Below are positions 16,115 to 51,038 of a stretch of 64,000 bases of DNA, piece by piece (the first letter of the stretch is position 1; each line of letters starts with the position of its first letter). The translations under genes were made by a program, and so were the position numbers. The notes under the pieces were generated by a model that made no database searches, was not told the origin of the DNA, and saw nothing but the letters and a program-made list of their open reading frames with translations. The stretch lies in the sequence record PV764603.1, one strand, 5' to 3'.

Positions 16115-17685
<1,571 letters not shown>

Positions 17686-17792
17686 CCTCGGCAGTCCCTG
17701 ATTGGCCTAAAAACACAGGAAAATCCTTGCCTCAAAACGCCCAAAAGTCGGTAGGATTAGGGGTTTTGAGGCATCCTGGGACCATCAGATTT

Positions 17793-34990: not shown

Positions 34991-36171
34991 ACTCCCTTCC
35001 GGCTAATCCTCAACCCCTGTCCCTCCACTCTAGGCCCATCCACACCCATCCCGCCTATCCTCCTCCCCTGCACATTCCCTCCGGCAAAAGCTTCCCTACC
35101 CATAACAAGGTAGAGAATAGGAATAGGGAGGATAGGGAGATAACCATAGCAGCATAGACAGTGAGGGAAGAGAATACAGGGAAGAACATAGGGGCAGGGA
35201 ATAAGCCTACTGCACACAATACAGAAGAGACAGGGACATAAGCTGGTATCCACACTAGATAGAAGCCATAGAGGATCATGCAAGAGATAGCAGCTATCCA
35301 GACCAATACCTTCGGTATCTCCCTACAGGACCAGACTAGGCAGTTAGTAGACAATGACCTAATCTCCCCTAGGGTCAAAGCCATATTGTTGGAGCAGCGC
35401 TCCACCGCCCTACTGTCTGACCGCATGGCAATCATTGGTCATCCTACACTGACTGCCCTGCTTACCAACCCATTCACCATCACGGGAGGATCACCCTATT
35501 ACCGTCGCTATCGGGTACGCACACTACGCCACTGCCGCACCACACTTGCAGTGTCGCCTCGCATCCCCATCAAAAACCTCTAGAAGTCGGTTACACCCAC
35601 TGAGTAATCGGGCAGATAAGGCAACAGGGTGCCATTTTGGCATCATCTGGACAACTACCGGAGTTTAGGGCAGTAAAGACCAGTATTTTCGTGCGAACAC
35701 CTTGCAGACCCCTAGGGCTTCCCCTTTGAACGAGTGGAGGCCCTTCTTTTTGACCGAAATATGACTGATTGACCACGTCAAAGCTCGGAGTCAAGGATTT
35801 GGCACCTTCCTGTAGAGGCCGAAAGAAGATTTTCTTCTCGGACCTCGGGCATCCCCTCATGCGTTGCCAAAATGGCACCGTCGGAGTGTCGGAATACACC
35901 CGAAAATGGCCCTTGACGTGGTACCCCACAGGGCGAAAAATTTAGGGGCTCCAGGATGCGTCTAGACACCCGATCCTTGCCAAGGATTACCGAGTTTGAC
36001 GCAAGGATTTTTCAAATATTTTGAGTCTGAGCAGGCCAATCCTGTAAATATTGGGTGTGGGCAAAACAGGGTGCCAAAATGGCAACATCACTGCCCTGTC
36101 CGACCAATTTTTCGACGCAGAACGCACCCTCCGTCCGAGGGTATGAATTTTTTGACGACCGAGGGTCAAAA
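34991..36171. other. Largely non-coding, strand-asymmetric segment with palindromes (candidate origin, terminus or control region)
   Basis: C/T-rich 34991-35100, then A/G-rich 35101-35280. Three TGCCA-N3-TGGCA sites, ATCCTTG-C-CAAGGAT at 35973-35987, and CCTGTAAATA at 36041-36050. Confidence 0.5.
35278..35583 (+). CDS. Possible hypothetical protein
   Basis: GAGGA RBS, 101 aa, atypical codon usage. Confidence 0.35.
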   Translation: MQEIAAIQTNTFGISLQDQTRQLVDNDLISPRVKAILLEQRSTALLSDRMAIIGHPTLTALLTNPFTITGGSPYYRRYRVRTLRHCRTTLAVSPRIPIKNL

Positions 36172-39985: not shown

Positions 39986-40014
39986 TTGACAGGGGGATAG
40001 GGTCCAGGCATAAT
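39986..40014 (+). promoter_or_regulatory. Host sigma70-type (early) promoter
   Basis: TTGACA (39986-39991), 17-bp spacer, CATAAT (40009-40014), upstream of gene 40097. Confidence 0.85.
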
Positions 40015-40096: not shown

Positions 40097-40441
40097 ATGA
40101 AGCGCAAGTCCCCTCGGAACCGTCCCCTGACCGCTGAACTGATGCCGGTACGCGCTGCCGCCGAGCGCATGGACCTTCGGACCGCCAACCTGTCCAGCCA
40201 CCTGATGACGGTGGAGTTCCCGGAGCAGGACGACTCCCAGGTTATCCTGACCTTCATGCTGAACAAGAATGCCCAGCTGGTGGCCTCGGTGGAACTGGAA
40301 CGTGCGGGTCATGTGCAGTGCGCCACCCCTTACCTGCGCGGTGCCATGCTTCGGAACAGCCTGAGCGCCACGCTTGACGACTATGACGTGGAGCGCGACC
40401 GCATCGCCTCGGTCATCGCCTTCCTCGACAGCATCGTCTAA
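40097..40441 (+). CDS. Hypothetical early protein
   Basis: GGAG RBS; first gene after the sigma70 promoter; strongly GC3-biased codons. Confidence 0.7.
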   Translation: MKRKSPRNRPLTAELMPVRAAAERMDLRTANLSSHLMTVEFPEQDDSQVILTFMLNKNAQLVASVELERAGHVQCATPYLRGAMLRNSLSATLDDYDVERDRIASVIAFLDSIV

Positions 40442-40458
40442 CCCTTCGGAGCCCCCTC

Positions 40459-40821
40459 ATGAACGCCAACGTCCTCGCCCTGATCGTACAGACCGCCGTT
40501 GAAATGGGACTGGTGGTCCAGCATACCGCCAACGACATTACTGTCCTGTTTGATGAATCGGAGATGGAAGCGGCAGGCATGTTGGTGCAAGCTGCTCCGG
40601 CCCTTCGATTTGTGTATGGCCCTGTCCTGACCGCCTACCCCGAAGCTCACATGGGATACCACGAAGGGGAGTTGCAGGCCATCGGGTTCGCCACCAAGGG
40701 CGTTCGGGGCGACGAACTGCGCGACTGCATCGAAAAGATGAAGACCCACTTCAAGCCCGAAGCCGTCATGCCCCTCTTTACCTTCCTCGGCCTGCTGAAC
40801 CGCAACGCTGCCCACCACTAA
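40459..40821 (+). CDS. Hypothetical early protein
   Basis: GGAG RBS. Confidence 0.65.
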   Translation: MNANVLALIVQTAVEMGLVVQHTANDITVLFDESEMEAAGMLVQAAPALRFVYGPVLTAYPEAHMGYHEGELQAIGFATKGVRGDELRDCIEKMKTHFKPEAVMPLFTFLGLLNRNAAHH

Positions 40822-40831
40822 GGAACCGACC

Positions 40832-40951
40832 ATGAAGATCAAGACCATCCTGCTGACCGCCGTTGCTATCTCGGCCATCCTTTGGGCCGTCGCCATGATT
40901 GGCAGCGCCCCGTTCGTCGGCCCCACCCTTTCCACCACCGTCCGCGCCTAA
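40832..40951 (+). CDS. Small membrane peptide (39 aa, not in the ORF track)
   Basis: AAGGA RBS; MKIKTILLTAVAISAILWAVAMIGSAPFVGPTLSTTVRA*. Confidence 0.65.
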   Translation: MKIKTILLTAVAISAILWAVAMIGSAPFVGPTLSTTVRA

Positions 40952-40970
40952 CCCAACCAGCACCAAAGGA

Positions 40971-41312
40971 ATGACCATGAACGCCAAGACCGCCAAGACC
41001 ACTTCGGACGTTGATGCACAGCGCGATGCCATGCAGAAAGCCAACAAGGCCGAGCAGTTCCGCCGCCACTCCCTGCTGCAAAGCATGACGGCCGACGGTC
41101 CCCTGTTCGTCCCCCTCGACAAGGCCCACACCTTCGGTCTCGCTCCCGCTGGCCGTGGCGGTGCCGCCCACCTTGACGCGCTGGAATCCCTCGGCCTCAT
41201 GGCTGCGCTGGTGCCCCACGCAACCAACCCGGACACATGGGGCGGCTACCTCGTCTGCCGGTCCAGCTGGGCACGCGAGCAAGTAGGTCCGGACGACGCC
41301 AAGTTCCTCTGA
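40971..41312 (+). CDS. Hypothetical early protein
   Basis: AAAGGA RBS, ATG 40971. Confidence 0.65.
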   Translation: MTMNAKTAKTTSDVDAQRDAMQKANKAEQFRRHSLLQSMTADGPLFVPLDKAHTFGLAPAGRGGAAHLDALESLGLMAALVPHATNPDTWGGYLVCRSSWAREQVGPDDAKFL

Positions 41313-41387
41313 CCCTGTAAACCTAGATTAGACGCGCCGCCTTCAGGCGGCTTCGTCGTATCTGCCACCCCGACCTAAAGGAATATC

Positions 41388-41738
41388 ATGGACCACGCTA
41401 CCGCAACCGTCATCAACGAACTGGCCAAGGACACGCCCGACGTCGCCTTCCGCATGCTGGGAATCGACGACGCCATCATCACGTTCAAGGCACCGGAAGG
41501 TGCGACCGAGCGTTGGCAACTGCGCATCGTAGTGACCGAAGAAGGCAAGCTGGAATGCTGCGCCGACCTCGTTGACACCCTGACCGACAAGGGCAGCCAG
41601 AGCTACCTGATCTATCGGCCCCTCAACCACGTCCGACAGACGCTGCATGATCTGCGTGCAGCCCTGCGTCTGGACCCACAATCTGTCGTGCACTTCCTGT
41701 CCCAACTCGCCGACCGTACCCGCCTCCTCAACGCATAA
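41388..41738 (+). CDS. Hypothetical early protein
   Basis: AAAGGA RBS; preceded by hairpin GCCGCC-TTCA-GGCGGC (41336-41351). Confidence 0.65.
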   Translation: MDHATATVINELAKDTPDVAFRMLGIDDAIITFKAPEGATERWQLRIVVTEEGKLECCADLVDTLTDKGSQSYLIYRPLNHVRQTLHDLRAALRLDPQSVVHFLSQLADRTRLLNA

Positions 41739-41748
41739 GGAACCCATC

Positions 41749-42015
41749 ATGAACAAGCTCTCCGCATTCTTCTCCAACCTGATCGCCTCTTCCGCTACCG
41801 ACATTGACGGGTTCTCCATCAAGGTCAAGGGCGAGCGCACGCTGGAACTGCTGGATGAAGGCCGCGCCGCAGTGGCCGACCCTGAGTTCGTGCAGCGTCA
41901 TGGCAACTACTGGCACTTCGTTGAACAGAAGCATCCCGAGTACCTGCTGGTCAGCACGGGCCGACTGGTCATCGTCAAGGTACTCCCTGACAACGCCATC
42001 GACGCAGCCGCATGA
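41749..42015 (+). CDS. Hypothetical early protein
   Basis: AAGGA RBS, ATG 41749. Confidence 0.65.
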   Translation: MNKLSAFFSNLIASSATDIDGFSIKVKGERTLELLDEGRAAVADPEFVQRHGNYWHFVEQKHPEYLLVSTGRLVIVKVLPDNAIDAAA

Positions 42016-42263
42016 GTACCGACACCCCGTTGCCCAACGTCGAGGCCGTGACCCACAACACCTTCGTGGTGCGCACGCAAGCAGGCTTCCGACAGGCCCT
42101 CAAAGCATGGGGCGGTAAGGTAAAGGGCGACACGATTCACGACTGGCCCACCGCCTATCCGAGTCTTGTCACGTTCACCGTCGGCTACTGCGGGTATCAT
42201 TACGTGCAGTGTACTGCCATCCACCTCAACACACTGATGCCCGTAGTGGGCCGGCACGCATAA
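42012..42263 (+). CDS. Hypothetical early protein
   Basis: ATGA overlap. Confidence 0.6.
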   Translation: MSTDTPLPNVEAVTHNTFVVRTQAGFRQALKAWGGKVKGDTIHDWPTAYPSLVTFTVGYCGYHYVQCTAIHLNTLMPVVGRHA

Positions 42264-42348
42264 GGAAATCCCATGCCCGACGTTACCCTGCACCTGTGCA
42301 TCATCTGAGTCCTCTAATTTCAGGTGTCTTCCCCTAAGCAGAGAAACC

Positions 42349-43137
42349 ATGAGAGTCCTGTCTACCGTAGGGTCCAACAAGTTCGTCTGGACCGATCATC
42401 ACCTAGACTACACCGCACCCGAAGACGATTCGCTATCTAGTGAGACTGCTTCCTCCGAAGAACACGCTCATGCGTTGAAACGTACTTCCTTACATCCCGA
42501 AGACCAAAAAGGGCACAAGGCACACGTAACTCGGGCACGCCAAACATCCGAACACGTTGGCCATGCAGTAGATCACTACAGAAGTATCGGACACAACGAT
42601 TTTAACCGAGAACTCCGCCATCCCTCCCACAAGGGTAAGATCAAAGGCAACGGTGACTACAACTTCACCGACCATTCGCTACATGATCTGCATAAAGGAT
42701 TGGGGCACGCTACCAGTTATCAGCTGAAACACAAGACCGCTGTGTACCGTGGGGTGGGCGAAGCCGCCCACAAGATCAAGGCGCTCAAGAAGGGAGACAC
42801 CTTCACTGACCACGGGTACACCAGTACCAGCCATAGCCCCTCAGTAGCCATTTCTTCCTTCGGTCATAGCGAGCACACGGGTACGCATCGAGAGCATCAC
42901 GTCGTCAAGATTCATTTGCCCAAAGGCTCCAAGATTATGCACGTACCTCACCACGTTGATGATGGCCTTACCCGGCATGAGGCAGAAACGGTGCTGCACC
43001 ACGGTAACAAGTTCAAGGTCTTGGGTCACAGCGTCCACGATCTACCGGGTAGTCCGTCCGGACACTCTTCCTCATTCGATAGCACCAAGCACCGGGTGCA
43101 CGTAACCCACGTCAAGCTAGTAAAGCAACGCAAATGA
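42349..43137 (+). CDS. Histidine-rich ADP-ribosyltransferase (R-S-E clade, VIP2/Alt-like)
   Basis: YRSIGHNDFNRELR, TAVYRGV (R), FTDHGYTSTS (S), RHEAETVL (ExE); about 39 His in 262 aa. Confidence 0.85.
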   Translation: MRVLSTVGSNKFVWTDHHLDYTAPEDDSLSSETASSEEHAHALKRTSLHPEDQKGHKAHVTRARQTSEHVGHAVDHYRSIGHNDFNRELRHPSHKGKIKGNGDYNFTDHSLHDLHKGLGHATSYQLKHKTAVYRGVGEAAHKIKALKKGDTFTDHGYTSTSHSPSVAISSFGHSEHTGTHREHHVVKIHLPKGSKIMHVPHHVDDGLTRHEAETVLHHGNKFKVLGHSVHDLPGSPSGHSSSFDSTKHRVHVTHVKLVKQRK

Positions 43138-43144
43138 GCGACTC

Positions 43145-43166
43145 AGGCATCCGAAAGGGTGCCTTT
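43145..43166 (+). terminator. Intrinsic terminator after the ART gene
   Basis: aggcatcc-gaaa-gggtgcct followed by T's. Confidence 0.7.
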
Positions 43167-43192
43167 GTCGTTTCTGCGCTCCCGAGTCGAGG

Positions 43193-43217
43193 GTGCCATT
43201 TTGGCATCCTGTAAATA
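43193..43217 (+). promoter_or_regulatory. Palindrome TGCCATTTTGGCA abutting TCCTGTAAATA
   Basis: Intergenic, upstream of an AAGGAGG RBS. Confidence 0.7.
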
Positions 43218-43330
43218 TAGGGACAAAGGAGGCGCTATGCCCCTCAAAGAACGGGTCCAACGGGGTGGTCCTTTTATCCCCGACTTCGTAGACGTTCGCT
43301 ACATCACCCATAGCCCAACAAGGAAGCCCC

Positions 43331-43867
43331 ATGAGCCCGAAGCTCTGCATCATGAACGACACCCACAACCAGCAGTCGGCTGTGATCGTCACCCTCCAGA
43401 AAGACGTGATTGCCCACACGATAAAGTTTGCCTACGAAGGTGACCCGGAAGGCCCTCGTTTCCGCCTGCCCACCGATCGGGGTAGCCTGATGCGCCTGCG
43501 TGACCTGATCGACAGCGTGCTTGATCCGAGCGTGGTTCCTGTCAACACCCTGCGTCAGCTGGCCGACCGTTGGGCAGCTGATCGTGACTACAAGGGCAGC
43601 CCGGTTGACGACATTCGCGCGCTGATTGGCGACACGCAAGATTCAGCACCCACCCTCGATCCCAAGTACCGGATGGCGTTGAAGTTTGCTATAGGTCATC
43701 TGGACATGAGCGACCAACCCGAGTACGGACAGCTGCAAGAACTGTTGGCCATGACCGAGCGTGGGGAAGGTGCACGTAACCCGTGCGCGCACTGCGATGA
43801 CGGCAAGGTCATCAACGAGAACTTCCGTACTGTTGAGCCGTGCCGCCACTGTGAGGACGCCAAATGA
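43331..43867 (+). CDS. Hypothetical protein with C-terminal CxxC...CxxC
   Basis: AGGA RBS; ends CAHCDDG...CRHC. Confidence 0.6.
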   Translation: MSPKLCIMNDTHNQQSAVIVTLQKDVIAHTIKFAYEGDPEGPRFRLPTDRGSLMRLRDLIDSVLDPSVVPVNTLRQLADRWAADRDYKGSPVDDIRALIGDTQDSAPTLDPKYRMALKFAIGHLDMSDQPEYGQLQELLAMTERGEGARNPCAHCDDGKVINENFRTVEPCRHCEDAK

Positions 43868-44379
43868 AGATATCCGAACTGCTGGACGAAGACACCATAT
43901 CCGAACTGGTCACTTCGATCTTCCGCATCCGACTGGACTCCGGCCGCAGCGTAGGTGCCGTACTGACCCTCAACTACCCGGCCGGTCACGTGCGTGCTCT
44001 GCTAACCAACGCGATCAACGAAACCGAAGTGTATGGAGAGGTCTCGACCTCCGTATCTACGGGTAGTGACCAACCTGATCCGCTGCTGGATGCACTAGGA
44101 GGCAACAGGCAGACCTACCACTTCCTGACAGGCAAGTATCCCGAGGAAGACGTGGAAGACGTGGCGGCAATGGCCCGACGCTGGCAATGGCTGTGCATCA
44201 ACCGACCGACCCTGCTCATCACTGGCATCTTCGGGAACGGCTGCACAAACAAAACCATCGATGACGTGGAAATCATCATCGACCGCGCCGACGATCGGGG
44301 CCTGCTGCCAGTGCGCTTCCCTCCAACTGAGGACTGCCACGTGGGACCGAACTGCATCTGCCAACACAAGGACCAGTAA
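43864..44379 (+). CDS. Hypothetical protein (KISELL family)
   Basis: ATGA overlap; N-terminus similar to 36172. Confidence 0.6.
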   Translation: MKISELLDEDTISELVTSIFRIRLDSGRSVGAVLTLNYPAGHVRALLTNAINETEVYGEVSTSVSTGSDQPDPLLDALGGNRQTYHFLTGKYPEEDVEDVAAMARRWQWLCINRPTLLITGIFGNGCTNKTIDDVEIIIDRADDRGLLPVRFPPTEDCHVGPNCICQHKDQ

Positions 44380-45143
44380 TGAACGTCACCAACTCCGTCA
44401 CCAAAGCCATCACCGAGTTCCTCCGCACCTCGGGGTGGGAGCGCACTACCCTTGAACTGACGCGCACTAAACTGATCCTCATCGCCCATTCGGGTGACGC
44501 CGTGGTCACCATCACGTCCACCGACGATGACGACTTTGTACGGCAGCTGCGTGTGCTGACCTCTGGCTACCGTCGCATGCAGGTAGAGGAGGATGAGGAA
44601 GAAGCCGATGATGATGATGATGATGATGCTCCCGCCCCGCAGTCCCGTTCCCCAGGGGTACGCCCGCGTAGGACTCCCGAACAGGCACCACAGTGTCGTG
44701 AGTGCGACGCTGATCCGGGTGAGCCCTGTGACTGCGGTACCGAGAACGAGGTCAACGCGCACCTAGGTGCAAACTGGATCGAGCTTGATCCCGAGCAGGA
44801 TCGGATGGGCCTCTGTTGGGTATCCAACACCGTGCGCCTTGCGTTCTTGGCCCGTATCAAGAAGCTGGAGAAGGATCGCTTGCGTGTCTCCCGCGAGACC
44901 ACCAAGGGAACCAGTCGTTGCACTATGTCACAGTGCCGAGACTTGGGCAGCGGTCGCTATCTGCATGTTGGTACCGGCAAGGGCATGTGGTATCGTGGCC
45001 GTCAGGTAAACGTGACGTGGAAGGAAACGCTGGTCCACTACATTGAGCATCATGGCTTCTGCCCACCGCCTGAGTTCCGCGAGGCCATCGACGCATTGAT
45101 GAACCACAAGAAGCCCGTACCTACGAAGAGGGACAAGCCATGA
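44379..45143 (+). CDS. Hypothetical protein with acidic linker and Cys/His C-terminal domain
   Basis: EEDEEEADDDDDDD linker, CREC...CDC, C-terminal TLVHYIEHHGFCPPPEF. Confidence 0.6.
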   Translation: MNVTNSVTKAITEFLRTSGWERTTLELTRTKLILIAHSGDAVVTITSTDDDDFVRQLRVLTSGYRRMQVEEDEEEADDDDDDDAPAPQSRSPGVRPRRTPEQAPQCRECDADPGEPCDCGTENEVNAHLGANWIELDPEQDRMGLCWVSNTVRLAFLARIKKLEKDRLRVSRETTKGTSRCTMSQCRDLGSGRYLHVGTGKGMWYRGRQVNVTWKETLVHYIEHHGFCPPPEFREAIDALMNHKKPVPTKRDKP

Positions 45144-50229: not shown

Positions 50230-50550
50230 ATGCCATACTCTACCCGTAATCGTGGCCTCTACATCATCATCGCGCTGCTCACGGGCATGCTGGGGTTCCA
50301 CAACTTCTACGCAGGACATTTGAAGAAGGGTGGCCTCCAGTTCTTGGCCACCGTGGTCAGCATCCTGATTATCCCCGTGACTGCCATGCTGTCTGTCCTG
50401 ATTTCTGGCGGTGACAACGGCGGTGAGGCGTCCAAGCTGGTGATGTTCGCTGTGGTTGCTGCTCCTGTGCTGGCAGTGTGCAATGCAATCAGCGTGATCC
50501 TGGACATCGTTGAAACCAAGTCTGACGGCTATGGCGATTTGATGCGTTGA
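50230..50550 (+). CDS. TM2-domain membrane protein
   Basis: RGLYIIIALLTGMLGFHNFYAGHLKKGGLQF, the canonical TM2 pattern (LG.LG.HrFYlG....G+); AAGGA RBS. Confidence 0.85.
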   Translation: MPYSTRNRGLYIIIALLTGMLGFHNFYAGHLKKGGLQFLATVVSILIIPVTAMLSVLISGGDNGGEASKLVMFAVVAAPVLAVCNAISVILDIVETKSDGYGDLMR

Positions 50551-50579
50551 AGAAAAGGCCCCAATTGGGGCCTTTTCTT
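50550..50579. terminator. Perfect 30-bp palindrome, bidirectional terminator
   Basis: aagaaaaggccccaa|ttggggccttttctt. Confidence 0.8.
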
Positions 50580-50599
50580 TTGCCGGAAATAATGAGAGG

Positions 50600-50625
50600 T
50601 TGCCAAAATGGCAATCCTGTAAATA
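50600..50625 (+). promoter_or_regulatory. Palindrome TGCCAAAATGGCA + ATCCTGTAAATA
   Basis: Intergenic, upstream of an AAGGAGG RBS. Confidence 0.7.
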
Positions 50626-50645
50626 TAGGATACAAGGAGGACGAT

Positions 50646-51038
50646 ATGATCCCAGACTTTGACCTGTCCAAAGCAGTGCGCCAAACCAAGTTCGTGGGCC
50701 CCAACTCGAAGACAGGTAACTGCACTGAGGCGGCTATTGCCACCCTGCTGCAAATTCCCCTAAGCGCCGTTCCCGAATTCAACCGTAGCGAAGACGACGC
50801 ATCTGACTTTTGGGAGAGCGTTGAAAGCTTCTTGGTTGAGCACGGGCTCTACATCAAGTACACCACCAAGCACAAACAGGGTGTGTATCTCGTAAGCGGT
50901 CCCACGGTAAGAGGCCGAGGGCATCACACTGTCATCTACAAGGATGGACAGTTGGCGTGGGACCCGCATCCCTCCGACGCAGGCGTCACCGAAGACGTGT
51001 GGTGCCTACACCTTCAAGACACGGATCCATACGCATGA
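50646..51038 (+). CDS. Papain-like / C39-like cysteine-protease-fold protein
   Basis: Putative catalytic triad GNCTEAAIA (Cys), HHTVIY (His), WDPHP (Asp). Confidence 0.6.
   Translation: MIPDFDLSKAVRQTKFVGPNSKTGNCTEAAIATLLQIPLSAVPEFNRSEDDASDFWESVESFLVEHGLYIKYTTKHKQGVYLVSGPTVRGRGHHTVIYKDGQLAWDPHPSDAGVTEDVWCLHLQDTDPYA

Follow-up and report, generated by a model that had tools for sequence, protein, structure and literature searches.

A histidine-rich, predicted ADP-ribosyltransferase of the jumbo Xanthomonas phage PhiXhv-16 and its clade of phage relatives

The ADP-ribosyltransferase gene and its product

The stretch of DNA analysed here, called the window, comprises bases 1-64000 of the 229,154-bp genome of Xanthomonas phage PhiXhv-16 (PV764603.1). 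This jumbo phage infects X. hortorum pv. vitians and was obtained in France from sewage. Within the window we have focused on one gene (42349..43137), the product of which is very probably a real and intact ADP-ribosyltransferase (ART) of the PF03496 type and a member of a histidine-rich clade of phage ARTs. In the deposited record this product is a hypothetical protein (XYR93368.1); a Pfam scan would have named the ART domain behind that label. Its surroundings at 42 kb are a long run of plus-strand genes, both small ones without known function and ones for nucleotide metabolism, and the main structural cluster (142-210 kb) is far away. No other ART-like open reading frame (ORF) was found in the 229-kb genome, where the gene is present in single copy. 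Four near-identical genomes are available (PhiXhv-12, PhiXhv-15, Ep026 and Ep032, the latter two from Israel), and the paper describing PhiXhv-16 regarded the lineage as a new genus without close relatives.

The protein of 262 amino acids (aa) contains 39 His, 23 Lys and 0 Cys. Over the 117 annotated genes of the window the His content is 2.9% on average and the runner-up, an 88-aa protein, reaches 9.1%; the binomial probability of the excess in the ART is 6e-17. The original prediction, made from the letters of the window, had described an intact R-S-E signature (VYRGV, GYTSTS, HEAE) and about 39 His (~15%) which also occur inside the catalytic fold. Both descriptions were borne out: R134, S159-T-S161, E211 and E213 are all present, the 39 His correspond to 14.9% of the protein, and in the catalytic core the share rises to 17.1%. 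An antisense gene was ruled out as the cause of this composition, as the opposite strand holds only short ORFs. Elsewhere in the window a 287-aa ORF on the minus strand (16881..17744, 21% His, G+C content at third codon positions (GC3) 0.31) lies antisense to the annotated gene 16115..17584 and is almost certainly its non-coding shadow frame, thus a His-rich ORF is by itself no evidence of a gene.

The match to Pfam PF03496 (ADPrib_exo_Tox) reaches 34.2 bits against a curated cut-off of 23.4 (E 2e-8), and weak matches to ART toxin or Alt-like families were obtained in PHROGs (phrog_802, E 0.0085; phrog_832, E 0.0043), while NCBIfam held no family for the protein. A word-indexed protein search returned 1 relative and an exhaustive HMMER search was needed to collect 264 at E<=0.001. 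Similarly, the protein alone found no match in the PDB with phmmer and a clade profile was needed: the profile of 84 small relatives matched VIP2 at 9e-23, and also CDTa, Certhrax, Vis, iota Ia and C3, with the Y-R, S-T-S, P-K-G and E-x-E blocks in register. Besides the catalytic residues listed in Table 1, conservation extends to the Y..N..R motif of the N-terminal helix and to the P-K-G loop, across a clade of just 25-40% identity.

The AlphaFold2 model computed from the alignment of the 84 relatives had a mean predicted local distance difference test score (pLDDT) of 84.9 and a predicted template modelling score of 0.85, and it was used in place of a single-sequence model (pLDDT 39.5), which was discarded. 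Searched with Foldseek against the PDB, it gave 107 matches at E<=0.001, and the best 50 of these 107 are all ARTs (E 4e-9 to 1e-6, probability 1.0, target-normalised template modelling score up to 0.65); the structures matched include VIP2, iota, C2, CDTa and C3. The comparison with ART folds that had been proposed along with the original prediction thus yielded a confident ART fold, with VIP2 among the structures matched. In BFVD many phage ARTs were recovered, an Alt protein among them; the top match (E 2.4e-17) is a 337-aa protein, equal in length to the Stenotrophomonas phage DLP_6 homologue found by tblastn. Ahead of the folded domain, residues 10-22 (K-F-V-W-T-D-H-H-L-D...) fit a clade-wide [K/R]-F-x-W...D motif and are packed on the core in the model, whereas residues 23-45 are acidic, Ser/Glu-rich and modelled with lower confidence.

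An extreme composition and a weak ribosome-binding site could be expected of a catalytically dead protein which has retained the ART fold for a structural or DNA-binding purpose. Such an explanation is very improbable in view of the conservation of R, S-T-S, E-x-E, the Y..N..R helix and the P-K-G loop among sequences that have diverged this far.

Table 1. Positions of the features discussed (window coordinates unless stated otherwise)
Feature	Position	Strand	Remarks
Candidate sigma-70-like promoter	39986..40014	+	TTGACA, 17 nt, CATAAT; 11/12; in the 394-nt gap before gene 40097
Seven small co-directional genes	40097..42263	+	Unknown function, unusually GC3-rich (0.74-0.85); upstream of ART
85-nt spacer	42264..42348	+	AAGGA box, 11-codon ORF 42273..42308, weak ribosome-binding site before ART start
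ART gene, intact	42349..43137	+	262 aa, 14.9% His, 8.8% Lys
N-terminal segment	42349..42483	+	aa 1-45; precedes folded domain
PF03496 stretch	42538..43026	+	aa 64-226; folded domain of the model ~aa 50-259
Catalytic Arg134 codon (Y-R-G)	42748..42750	+	Arg kept in 82/84 clade sequences
Ser159-Thr160-Ser161 codons (S-T-S)	42823..42831	+	Kept in 58-67/84 relatives
Glu211-Ala212-Glu213 codons (E-x-E)	42979..42987	+	ADP-ribosylating turn-turn (ARTT) loop; E211 79/83, E213 83/83
Terminator-like hairpin 43145..43164 and T-rich tail	43145..43174	+	Intrinsic type
Palindrome TGCCATTTTGGCA, then motif ATCCTGTAAATAT	43193..43218	+	Probable start of next transcription unit
CCTGTAAATA sites in the window	6598, 11758, 26249, 36041, 43208, 50616, 57943	+	Exact matches
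CCTGTAAATA site outside the window (record coordinates)	69026	+	Exact match
CCTGTAAATA sites outside the window (record coordinates)	115987, 102019, 85928, 80315	-	Exact matches

Histidine in a clade of small phage ARTs

Among the relatives, the small stand-alone proteins (190-340 aa) have a median of 9% His and a maximum of 18.5%. A His-rich query might have collected His-rich hits as an artefact, and this was rejected because the best-scoring hits are His-poor: they are ART domains inside proteins of 800-4000 aa, most of them with 0-2.5% His. In a neighbour-joining tree of the 170-column catalytic cores of the 150 best of the 264 hits, the state of at least 7% His takes 4 changes where shuffled data take about 50. 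The PhiXhv-16 protein falls in a clade of 70 sequences. The median core His is 11.8% within this clade and 2.0% outside it; the core of the PhiXhv-16 ART lies well above the 7% line of membership. On this phylogenetic evidence the His-richness of the PhiXhv-16 ART is inherited from its clade and not a one-off. The original prediction knew of no precedent for such enrichment in ARTs, a claim that had to be given up, since dozens of small phage ARTs in public data share the trait. No paper describing His-rich phage ARTs was found in a literature search, and the clade, its arrays and its N-terminal signal (see below) appear to be undescribed until now.

At 13 columns of the 84-sequence alignment His has a share of 40% or more, and the PhiXhv-16 ART carries His at 10 of them (positions 39, 59, 69, 155, 184, 189, 217, 227, 251 and 254), the other 29 of its 39 His being at variable positions. 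H227 and H254 are invariant and H217 is nearly so among the 14 closest sequences. In the printed alignment the conserved columns stand opposite polar residues of VIP2, which suggests surface positions. Several of the conserved His fall on adjacent predicted strands (180-190, 220-232, 247-259), thus they might form surface sites on the ART sheet that bind a metal such as Zn or Ni and so stabilise the enzyme or regulate it; the composition would then be due to metal and not to charge. We hold this to be rather doubtful: two thirds of the 39 His are not conserved, which fits compositional pressure better than discrete sites, and 0 Cys partners are available. Metal binding at the conserved columns would nevertheless be a compatible alternative to a role in charge.

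Among 50,697 deposited phage genomes the clade was found only in the PhiXhv/Ep026 group and in DLP_6, and its other members are metagenomic. Related loci, searched with an alignment of 14 sequences, place the relatives in late structural modules of T4-like phages. The ARTs follow gp2 in one contig (L006), and in DLP_6 an ART stands after gp4 and gp2; they flank a portal-prohead protease-scaffold-gp23 block on both sides in another contig (L008/L011), and in L023 their place is upstream of the portal, with the tail sheath on one side and the tail tube on the other. Usually they are tandem paralogues in 2-5 copies, and larger His-rich hits are ART-ART fusions. The longest array, in the 243.7-kb contig IMGVR_UViG_3300037418_002962 (L013:51-13619), contains at least 17 tandem His-rich ART paralogues in 13.6 kb (7-12% His); as it starts at the edge of the fetched stretch, the 17 copies are a lower bound. 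Unlike these relatives, the PhiXhv-16 gene has no tandem paralogues and is a single copy in an accessory block, outside any late structural module.

Many relatives share a 10-residue start with hydrophobic or aromatic residues at 4 and 7, L/I/V at 8 and E at 10. Its strict form was present in 14 of 64 His-rich sequences versus 0 of 62 large hits, and in the phage loci a looser form was present in 17 of 33 His-rich ART ORFs, compared with 6 of the 279 remaining ORFs (Fisher 2e-14). Most of the 17 paralogues of the L013 array begin in this way (M-x-x-F/L-x-x-F/Y-L-x-E), and the HEAT/LRV-repeat protein next to them has the same start. The six remaining ORFs with the looser pattern include this HEAT-repeat protein, a T4-like portal and prohead protease that share a contig with ARTs, and a second His-rich family (see below); the non-ART proteins with the same N-terminus beside the arrays contain 7-12% His.

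The second family was observed directly after the ART arrays of T4-like contigs (L008:6626-7351 and L006:4774-5481). Its proteins are of about 240 aa with 11-12% His and are 44% identical to each other, one member having the same N-terminal signal, and they found no Pfam, PDB or PHROG match.

In T4 the capsid targeting sequence consists of the first 10 residues of internal protein III, of which residues 4 and 7 serve targeting and 8 and 10 processing, and T4-related phages have varied basic proteins which bear such sequences (PMC9026906). Alt and the internal proteins are packed by means of the targeting sequence and cleaved after Glu, and they make up a diverse anti-restriction repertoire (PMC5694885, PMC3012670). 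Our comparison is based on the positions described in PMC9026906 and not on a T4 sequence. Because of their late structural contexts and the T4-like N-terminal pattern, the clade members in T4-like phages look like head-packaged effectors co-ejected with DNA, an interpretation that we infer by analogy.

It might be supposed that the PhiXhv-16 ART is likewise an injected effector of the Alt kind, packed in the head and entering with the DNA, with a His/Lys surface that binds DNA while it is protonated and cationic in the capsid and becomes nearly neutral in the cytoplasm. The late structural contexts of its relatives, with a partly T4-like N-terminus (PMC9026906, PMC5694885), and the His content of the non-ART neighbours of the arrays speak for it, as do other His-rich proteins in the structural half of PhiXhv-16 (647 aa, 13.1% His; 126 aa, 10.3% His). 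The computed net charge points in the same direction, with about +8 at pH 7.5, +27 at pH 6 and +45 at pH 5. At its own N-terminus the ART keeps hydrophobic residues at positions 4 and 7 (L4 and V7), yet it has G8 and N10 where relatives carry L/I and E, so that the features of an Alt-type propeptide cleaved after Glu are missing. Moreover, the gene is situated outside the structural half, behind a host-type promoter candidate and together with small accessory genes, and the head proteins of PhiXhv-16 are not detectably T4-like. We therefore regard packaging of the PhiXhv-16 ART as possible, though on the unlikely side.

Three further His-rich proteins of PhiXhv-16 were observed. The 647-aa protein (PV764603.1 188355..190298, L037:24355-26298; GC3 0.58) is lineage-specific and 68% identical in PhiXhv-15, and no Pfam, NCBIfam or PHROG hit was obtained for it. 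The 126-aa protein (154391..154771), weakly similar to the 647-aa protein, sits between tail tube and baseplate hub, and together with a 121-aa protein (177672..178037, 11.6% His) it belongs to the structural/lysis half.

A broader and quite speculative proposal, which we consider unlikely, is that high His content is a shared signature of phage effectors that travel in the capsid, namely the ARTs, a second enzyme-like family and HEAT-repeat proteins, and that it acts as a charge switch. Were this true, such proteins would be cationic and DNA-bound in the packed head and freed in the neutral cytoplasm, the PhiXhv-16 ART and the other His-rich proteins of the phage would be members of the class, and arrays of many copies, such as the 17 in one contig, would represent an arms-race repertoire like the T4 internal proteins.

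Transcription unit and history of the gene

The best reading of the locus is that the ART gene is the last gene of an accessory unit (~40097..43137) which closes at an ordinary operon boundary; the gene does not look like a separate unit carrying its own signals. The sigma-70-like site (Table 1) is a candidate start of transcription for this unit, predicted from its sequence; sites of this kind show no excess over shuffles in the region. The seven genes that follow form a mosaic accessory region: PhiXhv-15 and Ep026 lack gene 41388..41738, and the gene in them that matches 40971..41312 is placed differently. No promoter-like site was found in the 85-nt spacer before the ART gene.

Downstream of the gene, a hairpin of 8 pairs with a GAAA loop (dG -21.7 kcal/mol, z = -4.35) was matched by 0 of 200 shuffles, and with its T-tract it confirms the terminator that the original prediction had assigned to the gene. 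The palindrome and ATCCTGTAAATAT beyond it probably mark the start of the next unit, therefore the ART gene ends its own. The motif ATCCTGTAAATA(T/A) occurs 12 times in the genome, exactly as CCTGTAAATA and always along the local direction of transcription. Its sites are often just 3' of terminator-like hairpins, they are preceded by the palindrome TGCCATTTTGGCA at 35630, 43194 and 57928, and they are found upstream of DnaA-like, primase and topoisomerase genes and nowhere in the structural cluster. ATCCTGTAAATA is probably a phage-specific promoter or operator class, and the junction of terminator and ATCCTGTAAATA recurs at several other places in the genome. A late-promoter motif shared upstream of the structural genes was not found by k-mer counts and inspection by eye.

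Two side observations concern gene starts behind this motif. An unannotated ORF of 68 aa (43237..43443, plus strand) stands directly after the promoter-like motif, with a strong AAGGAGG box 3 nt upstream, and overlaps the annotated gene 43331..43867 in a different frame. The same order of motif, AAGGAGG and ATG is seen at 50616, inside the annotated gene 50547..51038. The gene starts near 43237 and 50616 may be in need of revision.

The GC3 of the ART gene is 0.60 compared with 0.74-0.85 in the six genes directly upstream, the mean of the window being 0.667 (standard deviation 0.06). After correction for amino acids the ART is the second most shifted of 100 genes towards A/T-ending codons (z -2.6), and the six upstream genes are shifted the opposite way (z +1.8 to +3.8). 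Since these neighbours are unusually GC3-rich, the local contrast is real but is partly due to them; the codon shift noted in the original prediction thus persists, with a contrast that the upstream genes exaggerate.

The original prediction had combined this shift, the terminator and the upstream mini-ORF into a self-contained cassette, which corresponds to a recent moron: a horizontal insertion that truncated a resident gene and brought its own expression signals. The AAGGA box and the 11-codon ORF do exist, but as the remnant of a cut-off gene they are indistinguishable from chance: SD-like (Shine-Dalgarno-like) boxes with an ATG, but not at an annotated start, have a density of about one per 1.3 kb on this strand, which amounts to a chance of about 6% per 85-nt spacer. 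The mini-ORF is in the frame of the upstream gene and begins three codons past the stop of that gene. The absence of any promoter match in the spacer and the recurrence of the terminator-plus-motif junction likewise disagree with a cassette that carries its own signals.

The comparison of genomes gave evidence on both sides. The ART gene and its upstream spacer are syntenic and 100% identical at the nucleotide level in PhiXhv-15 and Ep026, and the protein is 100% identical in PhiXhv-12 and Ep032. Synteny in relatives had been named as a finding that would speak against a cassette, and it was indeed seen in all five sequenced members, but the test is weak because these close relatives are one species. 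Among PhiXhv-16, PhiXhv-15 and Ep026 the gene lies in an island (42012..43330, ~1.3 kb) with at most 2 substitutions, amid flanks which are 87-97% identical. Zero changes over 874 nt at 1-2.5% divergence have a probability between 2e-4 and 3e-10, which suggests either that the segment was shared recently or that the constraint on it is unusual.

A distant relative of the lineage is represented by L039, a 17.8-kb contig of Logan SRR22477848 with a GC content of 0.55. Six neighbouring genes on this contig have counterparts in the 32-57 kb region of PhiXhv-16, with identities of 30-60%, and its His-rich ART homologue (217 aa) is 36% identical to that of PhiXhv-16. As this value is within the range of the other shared genes, a long residence in the lineage is suggested. 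In L039 the ART forms a two-gene unit (L039:2583-4513) with a 408-aa protein (9.8% His, with R-F-G-W in its start), and the unit is opposite to all neighbours. This inversion, the codon shift, the strong terminator, the identity island and the fact that most clade relatives are found in lower-GC phages (GC 0.34-0.51) are what could be expected of a recently acquired cassette. However, the nearest relative outside the lineage has at most 42% identity, so no donor is visible, and the L039 homologue has diverged like the other shared genes. The idea of a self-contained cassette thus has weak support and a recent moron is unlikely; the gene appears to be old in the lineage yet able to move as a small unit.

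Proposed function and comparison with known systems

Taken together, we assign a probability of about 0.6 to the reading that the gene encodes an active mono-ADP-ribosyltransferase of the VIP2/C3/Alt kind, belonging to the His-rich clade, which tags host protein and is, by a slight margin, more likely to be synthesised after infection than delivered with the virion. The analysis itself shows the sequence features, the membership of the family, the predicted fold, the clade trait, the genomic contexts and the conservation; that the enzyme is active and specific for arginine, what it modifies, when it is made and what its histidines do are points that we infer. The enzyme, probably active judging by its conserved residues, would use NAD+ to tag one or more host proteins with ADP-ribose. 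Its target residue would most likely be arginine, because the ARTT loop carries E-x-E, a form typical of arginine-specific ARTs. The modification could reprogramme the Xanthomonas cell or disarm its defence early in infection, and a role in host takeover or anti-defence is the natural reading. The histidines inside the catalytic core, partly at the ~13 conserved columns, would make the ART a polycation whose charge depends strongly on the environment and would be highly positive where His is protonated, as among packed DNA, for instance. Such a role would agree with the packaging context in which the clade occurs and with the His-rich non-ART proteins that have the N-terminal signal in common. 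Regarding timing, we lean slightly towards synthesis after infection, as with ModA and ModB, over Alt-like delivery in the virion, on account of the position at the end of an accessory unit, the candidate host-type promoter, the strong terminator and an N-terminus without the processing residues.

Several observations weigh against this reading. The promoter candidate at 39986..40014 is a consensus match only, and the ribosome-binding site of the ART gene is weak. The T4-like N-terminal signal is seen in just a quarter to half of the clade members, and the portal and protease of PhiXhv-16 were not detectably T4-like, so the rules of T4 may not transfer; the head protease was not assigned to any family of known cleavage specificity. 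The paper describing PhiXhv-16 labels the gene hypothetical. Finally, the eight residues that precede E-x-E in the ARTT loop include no aromatic one, in which the printed alignment shows a difference from VIP2, and the choice of substrate may therefore differ from that of the classical arginine-specific toxins.

The missing aromatic residue, a net charge that is positive at every computed pH and the high content of His and Lys could also be reconciled with a nucleic-acid target, that is with ADP-ribosylation of DNA or RNA or with RNA attachment, which has reportedly been found for T4 ModB, the polycationic surface binding the nucleic acid. This is improbable, since the proteins matched best in sequence and in fold are E-x-E ARTs that modify protein, and the searches returned no match specific to DNA-targeting ARTs.

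Phage ARTs are established tools of host takeover and one more would be routine. What is unusual is a coherent clade with 8-18% His in a conserved catalytic fold, 17 tandem copies and, often, N-termini that resemble capsid-targeting ones; these features would suggest that a set of delivered effectors has gone undescribed and that histidine plays a physical role. The finding has a practical side as well. PhiXhv-16 was proposed for crop biocontrol and reported to be free of toxin genes on the basis of CARD, ResFinder and VFDB look-ups, with no mention of an ADP-ribosyltransferase in the paper, yet it encodes a PF03496 domain, and annotation pipelines should name this domain. The PhiXhv-16 ART comes without a delivery component, and there is no sign that it would act anywhere but in the bacterial host.

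Like VIP2, iota Ia, C2-I and CDTa, the PhiXhv-16 ART has the R, S-T-S and E-x-E residues, the P-K-G (PN) loop and the N-terminal Y..N..R helix. It differs from them in being a phage-encoded protein of one domain without the duplicated adaptor domain and in its 15% His, the content of the VIP2-type toxins being ordinary, and in the fold alignments the identity is just 13-21%. No gene for a binding component was found among the annotated or scanned neighbours, and a binary toxin is not the case because both the adaptor domain and the partner are lacking. In size and in its small single domain it resembles the C3-like exoenzymes and the ART-ARH (ADP-ribosylhydrolase) effector of Listeria (PDB 8za7), which was the top Foldseek hit (3.6e-9). 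C3 enzymes, however, carry Q-x-E and modify asparagine, while the loop of the PhiXhv-16 ART is E-x-E. No ARH or immunity gene was found beside it among seven upstream and three downstream neighbours (five compared with Pfam, seven with PHROGs). The scan of these ten genes gave a single family hit, a domain of unknown function in 44379..45143. This plus-strand gene was observed to contain the DUF7919 domain and a long Glu/Asp run with seven consecutive Asp, and its antisense frame reads as a His run.

Among phage proteins, the ART domains of large virion or polyvalent proteins (MuF fusions) are the top HMMER hits (E 1e-23 to 1e-15) and also appear among the BFVD matches, but they are His-poor (0-2.5%), are embedded in 800-4000 aa and fall outside the His-rich clade. 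With the T4 internal proteins many clade relatives share the 10-residue start of the capsid-targeting type, according to the description of positions in PMC9026906, and the relatives are likewise basic, diverse and arrayed (PMC3012670); the PhiXhv-16 ART departs from them with G8 and N10. T4 Alt, ModA and ModB are phage ARTs which modify the host RNA polymerase and other proteins (PMC7824862). A link to Alt can be seen in the BFVD matches and in the clade member of DLP_6, which matches an Alt-like PHROG at 1.5e-7, whereas the Alt-like PHROG matches of the PhiXhv-16 ART itself are weak (E 0.004-0.009) and it has no N-terminal part of the size found in Alt. We know of no His-richness in Alt or Mod proteins. 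Based on its sequence and its modelled fold, the PhiXhv-16 ART would thus work like Alt, ModA and ModB and be built like the enzymatic domain of VIP2 or C3.

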